64,000 nt of DNA from Calcarisporiella thermophila CBS 279.70 (lineage: Eukaryota; Fungi; Calcarisporiellomycota): assembly GCF_041956535.1 (NCBI RefSeq), contig NW_027192201.1, positions 672,206 to 736,205 of the forward strand. The letters are read 5' to 3'. Shown one piece after another: positions 56,469 through 58,316 of this stretch. How positions within the stretch are numbered: position 1 is the stretch's first letter; every line of letters starts with the position of its first letter. Position numbers and translations under genes: made by a program. The notes beneath the pieces were generated by a model that saw only the letters and a program-made list of their open reading frames with translations, did not search any database and had not been told where the DNA came from.

Positions 56469-58316
56469 TTAGCTTTCTACCCATTTAAATGAACCCATAA
56501 TTAAATATTTTTTCGGTAGTCTTCCAGGAGAGGGTGATAGCACAGTCATTTTGCGTTTCGCCTCGTTTACCTCTGACCTATTAGAGCAATAAAAGAGGAA
56601 GGAAAAAAAAGAAGGTTTCAGAAATGGGGTATCTAATAAATCATCGCACAATGCGATTACATACACATAAACAAAACCAGCAACGTTGGCCTCAAGTACT
56701 TCCTCCTCGCTTGTTGCATTTGATAAAGCAAGTACCGAATGCAGGAGAATGTCGCCTGGATCTACGGGCATCAATTGTGTTTCGCTAACGGTACGGTCGG
56801 ATCCGAGAGGTAGCGCAGAAGAAGGTGCAAGAGAGCCTTTAAATCGTAACAAAATGGTTAAAAATCCGAGATTCTGTATAAAAATAGCAAAGTTGGATAT
56901 AACCTCCGCCCACACGATATATTACTACATCGCTAAAATGGAGAATGACGCTATACGGTGACAGCTCTGATTTCGGTGTCCCATAAAAATACTCTTTAAT
57001 TTTTGCCATTTTAGCCTGTCGAAGAAATGCAGGCTCCCTTTGGACCACCCCTCCTGATTTGGCTAGTTTTACGACTTGGAGCGTAGAATTGTCCTTATAA
57101 ATATTAAGCATATCGCTATAGAGACGCTCGTGGCCCAGGACCAGAAGTGTTGTGACCATAAAGGATTGGATAATATGATCGAGTACTGAGTAAGCACTCT
57201 GGTCAATAAAGCCGCAAGTGTCGATAATTAAACCCGATACACGTGCTAGAAGAAAATATTAAATGGGGAACATACCGGGCCAAAATGAGGTACAACACAT
57301 ACCATCTTCGTCATCTGCCATACGGCATTTTACAGCATGACTTAAGCGCGATACAAGTAATTTGTAAAGCTTTTCATTATCGCTAATGGATGTGTACCCA
57401 TAATAATATGAAAGTGGGGAAACTGAGGACCCTGTTGTGGGAACTGCACCTAATCCGAATGCCTCGTCTACCTCAACGATATGAGAAAGGGCAGTTGCTG
57501 AAAGTGTACCAGGCATGGTAATAGTTCCCTATAAAAAAAGAGGGGAACTCGTGAAAAATCCCCAGTAAATTACAATGGAGTATATCAACTTACCTCATCC
57601 GAATCCAAATTGACGTAGATAGGTCGCCTCCCCATACGTACACCATAACACATAAGTAGTTTACAAAGTGATGTTTTTCCAACGTCAGTTGGCCCTAACA
57701 CGAGAACTTTGGGACCTTCTTCACCTTTTTCCTTCGCATCCTCGCGTCGTTGTTCAAGAGCCATATGTGTGTTAAGATAACTTATCATTGGTGTTTCATT
57801 AGCCTGGTATGCTACACTACAATTACCAGTGATGTGTAGTCCAGAAAGAGAGAAAAATGGTTAAGGATAAAATAAAACTAAGGAATGCTAATTAGTATAT
57901 GCTAAGGGTTAAAAGCAAAAAAAAAAGGATATCTGAAGGTTGCAACCATGCCATGTGAATAAGGCAATTTTGGTGCCAGAAAAAACATATTCTGGTCCAA
58001 CAGCAAGTTCAGCACCAAAAATCTCGGCCGTTCCAGATTTAAGCTGTAAATGGTTTATAAAACGTGTAAAAATTATAGAGGAATTGCATATTTTAGATCA
58101 GTGGTTCCACATTTGATTGCTACCTTTAACTTGATGCGCTCTCCAAACTTTACTTCTAGTCGTAGTTCGCATTCGGCTTCAAGTGTCCATTCTTTTGTCT
58201 CCGTATTCTACGTGAATAAATCAGGGATATATCAGTTGAAATATATAATCTCTGCAAAAACACATGGTGTTGCCTTTCGACAACTTAGCATGCCGTACCT
58301 CAATTAATTTTGACAT
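56469..58316 (-). CDS. CLP1: Polynucleotide 5'-kinase / cleavage factor subunit Clp1; contains an AT-AC intron
   Basis: GTAEIFGAEL, IALFTWHGC, TPMISYLNTH, P-loop GPTDVGKTS, GLIIDTCG, KSGGVV, NVAGFVYV. Confidence 0.95.
57834..57932 (-). other. U12-type (minor spliceosome) AT-AC intron in CLP1
   Basis: 5'ss ATATCCTTT, branch TCCTTAAC (57867-57860), 3' end CAC. Splicing joins WHGCNLQ|ITGNCSVAY in frame. Confidence 0.9.

Follow-up and report, generated by a model that had tools for sequence, protein, structure and literature searches.

Introns of the minor (U12-type) class persist in fungi outside the Dikarya (PMC10639083, PMC2846911, PMC2396436). Minor introns and minor snRNAs were described earlier from Rhizopus and Phycomyces (PMC2396436, PMC2846911), and in a survey of more than 3000 genomes Rhizophagus had 205 of them and Basidiobolus 249, whereas no convincing minor intron was seen in Dikarya; in most species, the majority of minor introns are of the GT-AG type (PMC10639083). 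Calcarisporiella thermophila, whose genome (JAZGQU000000000) is described in PMC11393059, is placed by the NCBI taxonomy in a phylum of its own, Calcarisporiellomycota, and a literature search returned no paper linking Calcarisporiella and the minor spliceosome. With the early-diverging fungi known to host U12 introns (PMC2846911, PMC10639083) it shares the intron motifs, candidates for the four minor snRNAs and minor-specific proteins, but it differs from them in belonging to Calcarisporiellomycota and in a strict motif census in which AT-AC introns outnumber GT-AG introns. On purely computational grounds, the analysis presented here adds a fungal phylum to those in which the minor spliceosome is apparently complete. 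Since minor introns outside the Dikarya were already known and the public gene model at this locus was already correct, the known picture is left unchanged.

The intron considered here lies in CLP1, whose product is a polynucleotide 5'-kinase subunit with a role in mRNA 3'-end cleavage. The window, that is, the whole stretch of 64,000 nucleotides that was analysed, comes from a contig of 890,265 bp (C11) within a searched assembly of 28.16 Mb in 116 contigs. The public protein VTP21DRAFT_1435 (P0172, Calcarisporiella thermophila, 433 aa), retrieved by a search with exon 6 and then by a query with a full-length chytrid orthologue, is the CLP1 product and maps onto the window free of mismatches, with its CDS at 58316..56469 on the minus strand. 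The protein carries PF16573, PF16575 and PF06807 in this order (CLP1_N, CLP1_P and the Clp1 C-terminal domain). CLP1 exons were searched singly, and individual exons matched Pfam CLP1_N and CLP1_P above the cut-offs; all full-length comparisons relied on the public protein. The features to which the text refers are as follows.

56469..58316, minus strand: CLP1 coding region, 8 exons and 7 introns, from the exact mapping of the public protein
57933..58043, minus strand: CLP1 exon 3, 37 codons, ending ...WHGCNLQ; CLP1_N profile positions 22-59
57834..57932, minus strand: predicted U12-type AT-AC intron (CLP1 intron 3), 99 nt, phase 0, from motifs, public model and orthologues
57924..57932, minus strand: 5' splice site ATATCCTTT, then a T run; 9/9 match to the U12 consensus /RTATCCTTT
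57860..57867, minus strand: branch-site box TCCTTAAC; 8/8 match to the U12 consensus TCCTTRAC
57834..57835, minus strand: 3' splice site AC, 26 nt past the branch box, the sole nearby in-frame AC
57594..57833, minus strand: CLP1 exon 4, 80 codons, starting ITGNCSVAYQANETPM and including the P-loop; CLP1_N positions 60-92 and the start of CLP1_P

Intron 3 is the longest of the seven introns of the gene and the sole U12-type one. Exon 3 ends with ...TGC AAC CTT CAG at 57933, the intron starts with ATATCCTTTT at 57932, followed by the T run, and ends with ...GGACTACAC at 57834, where exon 4 opens with ATC ACT GGT. The branch box is followed by 26 pyrimidine-rich nucleotides, devoid of AG, up to the 3' end. 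Splicing of 57932 to 57834 yields WHGCNLQ|ITGNCSVAYQANETPM, and because exon 3 covers CLP1_N positions 22-59 and exon 4 resumes at 60-92, the join is seamless in profile coordinates. If unspliced, the intron reads ISFFFCF and reaches a stop as its eighth codon, before the P-loop (GPTDVGKTS, within exon 4). Use of either of the two further AC dinucleotides upstream would shorten the intron, to 94 or 97 nt, and shift the frame. The preliminary description of this locus had proposed an AT-AC U12 intron on these grounds, and its splice site, branch box, length of 99 nt, colinearity with Clp1 proteins, retention stop and frame-shifting alternative ACs were all borne out. The same junction, 57932..57834, is exactly the third intron of the VTP21DRAFT_1435 model; the deposited annotation therefore already contains the AT-AC junction.

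Two other accounts of these letters had to be weighed. The first supposes that no splicing takes place and that the locus is a pseudogene or encodes a truncated protein, with the motifs present by chance. Taken singly, each motif does occur in the window at about chance frequency (RTATCCTT, 7 found against 5.7 expected; TCCTTAAC, 2 found against 2.2 expected). The motif pair of intron 3 falls exactly on a conserved exon boundary, and at the six further RTATCCTT sites of the window no fitting combination of branch box and exon context was found. Moreover, the copy is intact, with eight open exons that match the Clp1 domains in order, retention would end translation at the eighth codon ahead of the P-loop, and the joint motif is enriched genome-wide (see below), all of which leaves this account with a negligible probability.

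The second supposes removal by the major (U2-type) spliceosome, either through a nearby GT/GC-AG pair or as a rare U2-type AT-AC intron. A yeast-like TACTAAT is found inside intron 3, and weak GT/GC donors (57946 and 57943) and AG acceptors (57812 and 57804) are available around it. We listed each GT/GC-AG and AT-AC pair within 58000-57780 that leaves an open frame. Every in-frame GT/GC-AG pair deletes 7-20 conserved Clp1 residues, 12 in the case of the best alternative (57946/57812), and the residues at stake are retained in the public protein and in all orthologues; among the listed pairs, 57932/57834 alone retains every conserved Clp1 residue. U2-type removal thus appears very improbable. 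Taken together with the orthologues described below, the sequence evidence indicates that 57932..57834 is, with high probability, a genuine U12-dependent AT-AC intron in CLP1, and one that is ancestral rather than new.

To place the intron among its relatives, Clp1 loci were fetched, each public protein was mapped exactly to its DNA, and the introns were laid on one protein alignment. At column 137 of this alignment, in phase 0, Calcarisporiella and four other fungi have an AT-AC intron starting with ATATCC. It measures 70 nt in Rhizophagus diaphanus, 80 nt in Basidiobolus meristosporus, 91 nt in Phycomyces blakesleeanus and 111 nt in Batrachochytrium dendrobatidis, so that all four share with Calcarisporiella the column, the phase, the ATATCC start and the AC end, whereas the remaining sequence of the Calcarisporiella intron is unrelated to theirs. 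In Massospora cicadina, the accession of which was identified through PMC9584336, ATATCCTTTT...TCCTTGAC...TAC stands at the matching codon. Syncephalis has ATATCCTTT three codons downstream of the Calcarisporiella position, with a frame-restoring AC. The codon boundary of intron 3 is occupied in Chytridiomycota, Zoopagomycota, Glomeromycotina and Mucorales. CLP1 of Umbelopsis, Mortierella alpina and the chytrid Gaertneriomyces is without an intron at column 137, and the sole non-fungal locus that was examined, from the plant Cardamine, has GT-AG introns on both sides and none at this column. As the AT-AC intron is common to chytrid and zygomycete lineages, it predates their split. The simplest reading of this comparison is a single ancient U12 intron that dates back at least to the chytrid-zygomycete common ancestor, followed by several clean losses.

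The nearest available relative by Clp1 sequence is Jimgerdemannia, with 58% identity in exon 6. Both of its loci (L045, RBNJ01008423; L046, RBNI01006403) end inside CLP1, and the intron region is missing from them. Because the contigs stop within the gene, the public Jimgerdemannia protein is a C-terminal fragment of 247 aa whose N-terminus is spurious.

These comparisons bear directly on a reading put forward in the preliminary description, namely that the U12 intron may be a recent gain of this lineage and may gate Clp1 as a rate-limiting step, through which minor splicing would be tied to mRNA 3'-end formation and tRNA processing. Mammalian minor introns are spliced slowly, which counts in favor of such a gate, as does the fact that intron 3 is both the only U12-type and the longest intron of the gene. 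The gain, however, is refuted, since five other fungal lineages, represented by Batrachochytrium, Basidiobolus, Rhizophagus, Phycomyces and Massospora, have a homologous AT-AC intron. Gating is argued against by the three fungal lineages that lost the intron and kept CLP1, which makes the intron dispensable, and also by the splicing of minor introns in Rhizophagus, for which no link to proliferation was seen (PMC10639083). We consider the combination of recent gain and gating improbable, and favor an ancestral intron instead. Being old, common to many early-diverging fungi and already present in the public model, the CLP1 intron is in this respect ordinary. Its deep conservation nonetheless makes it usable as a marker of whether early-diverging fungi have kept or lost U12 splicing.

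One trait in which the Calcarisporiella intron stands apart from its orthologues is the position of the branch box. In human and in the animals studied, the optimal distance from the branch site to the 3' splice site of U12 introns is about 10-20 nt. In CLP1 intron 3 it amounts to 26 nt when counted from the box end and ~27 nt when counted from the branch A, in spite of a perfect TCCTTAAC, compared to 14-16 nt in most of the orthologous introns. A box closer to the 3' end and better than TCCTTAAC was sought in intron 3 and not found. Frame-preserving candidate U12 introns across the Calcarisporiella genome have distances of 7-34 nt, and about five of them have at least 25 nt, so that the spacing of 26 nt sits in the upper part of the range of this genome. 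The earlier remark that the distance is somewhat long was accurate. In one of the candidates (L018), the first 45 nt contain a single AC, at a distance of 30 nt and beyond a long pyrimidine tract.

The candidates come from a census of the whole genome, in which we searched for ATATCCTT (or its GT form) followed 20-200 nt further on the same strand by TCCTTAAC, with the reversed motif as a control. The AT form was found 25 times compared to 6 in the control and the GT form 13 times compared to 2, giving 38 pairs against 8. Frame restoration at these loci was assessed by cutting at an AC or AG located 7-34 nt past the branch box; among the 38 loci (L005-L041), most of the short ones give frames that are open to the edges of the fetched flanks. 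AT-type pairs exceed GT-type pairs in this strict census by 25 to 13. As observations in their own right, box-to-3' gaps of 25-34 nt with pyrimidine tracts recur among the loci (for example, L010, L018, L029 and L035), and both these long gaps and the excess of the AT type are unusual in comparison with U12 introns elsewhere.

The 5' splice site motif on its own is also more frequent than in the reversed control, with 686 against 415 genome-wide occurrences of ATATCCTTT and 347 against 297 of GTATCCTTT. A U12-rich genome with 'hundreds' of AT-type minor introns was considered on these counts and rejected, given that only 2-4 of 40 sampled sites resemble real introns, a proportion that marks the reversed motif as a poor null. 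The minor introns of Calcarisporiella more likely number in the tens than in the hundreds.

If the intron is U12-dependent, the genome should encode the corresponding machinery, as the preliminary description had supposed. Rfam models for U11, U12, U4atac and U6atac were run over the whole assembly, and one end-to-end candidate was obtained for each of the four. The U11 candidate scores 53.1 bits (Rfam cut-off 39) and has AAAAAGGGC at its 5' end and an Sm site, and the U6atac candidate scores 47.6 bits (cut-off 33). The U12 candidate, at 44.4 bits, is below the Rfam cut-off of 53, with its branch-binding GAGUAAGGA box and Sm site intact; it measures just 100 nt, as it is without the 3' stem-loop (~45 model positions). 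The U4atac candidate, at 42.9 bits, is likewise below its cut-off of 53 and has the 5' stem and a terminal Sm site. The four candidates lie at the following positions.

C1:926673-926772 (L001:1501-1600), minus strand: U12 candidate, from the Rfam search
C2:193832-193964 (L002:1501-1633), plus strand: U6atac candidate, from the Rfam search
C11:412021-412144: U4atac candidate, from the Rfam search
C6:999547-999746: U11 candidate, from the Rfam search

When folded together, the U4atac and U6atac candidates form the intermolecular stems I and II, in which several positions are changed on both strands with respect to the human sequences; such two-sided changes argue that both are real partners. The search for minor-specific proteins covered PDCD7 and SNRNP25. 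A PDCD7 (59K) domain was located on C24 with 33.9 bits, and the SNRNP25 (25K) ubiquitin-like domain was located on C31, split over two exons with 38.9 and 27.5 bits, all above the Pfam cut-offs. With four snRNA candidates and two protein domains in place, the expectation that minor-spliceosome parts are encoded in this genome was supported. Both the U12 reading of the intron and the presence of a minor spliceosome can be regarded as well supported, as judged from sequence and comparison. Points that weigh against the U12 reading are the spacing of 26 nt behind the branch box, the scores of the U12 and U4atac candidates below the Rfam cut-offs and a U6atac candidate devoid of AAGGA.

The candidates also fit the CLP1 intron itself. 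The 5' end of the U11 candidate, AAAAAGGG, is complementary to the 5' splice site of intron 3, and GUAAGGAUA of the U12 candidate can pair with the branch box and two upstream bases, leaving one A bulged. In the splicing pathway that we propose, a U11/U12 di-snRNP would recognize intron 3, with U11 AAAAAGGG pairing with CCUUUUUU of the 5' splice site and U12 GUAAGGAUA pairing with UAUCCUUAAC, so that the branch adenosine would be bulged. The U4atac/U6atac.U5 complex would join next, and the AC at 57835-57834, ~27 nt beyond the branch A, would serve as the 3' splice site, joining ...NLQ to ITG... in phase 0.

The U6atac candidate is atypical in that it has GUCGA right before the AGAGA box and lacks AAGGA, the box through which most U6atac snRNAs pair with the 5' splice site. 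A second, canonical U6atac was not found by a search with the pattern AAGGAGAGA..GGTT.GCAC at up to 2 mismatches and a subsequent cmscan of nine candidate loci. A 'CC variant' of U6atac with [GU]CCGA in place of AAGGA is known in cnidarians, Acanthamoeba, Physarum and oomycetes, whereas Rhizopus and Phycomyces have the ordinary AAGGA (PMC2396436). The Calcarisporiella candidate resembles this variant (PMC2396436) in being without AAGGA and still pairs with U4atac, but its box reads GUCGA and not [GU]CCGA. One could join these traits into a single reading, in which minor splicing is atypical in this fungus (GUCGA U6atac, short U12 without the 3' stem-loop, AT-AC majority and tolerance of pyrimidine-rich gaps of 25-30 nt) and the CLP1 intron, dating from before the chytrid split, is kept because it ties the dosage of Clp1 to the activity of the minor spliceosome; we regard this reading as unlikely.

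The survey of orthologues also flags mis-annotated CLP1 models in two other fungi. The preliminary description had expected standard gene predictors to mis-model the intron, and this turned out not to apply to Calcarisporiella, for which VTP21DRAFT_1435 is correct, but to apply to the public proteins of Massospora and Syncephalis. In the Massospora model, an intron of 66 nt (L043:1816-1881) is translated, which adds 22 extra residues. The public CLP1 of Syncephalis sp. (L042:3290-3445) uses a GT-AG pair that skips the conserved FTWQGC; this gene apparently lacks one T in a run of Ts immediately upstream, with a frameshift as the result.

Finally, faint U12-like traits were noticed in another intron of the Calcarisporiella gene. 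Intron 6 (56837-56903, minus strand) is a GT-AG intron that starts with GTTATATCCA and contains TTTTTAACC at 21 nt ahead of the AG, and its counterpart at this column in Batrachochytrium starts with GTATCCAATT. A plain GT-AG intron fits both the public model and the orthologues, and the U12-like traits may be due to chance or may represent a relic of an old switch of intron type.
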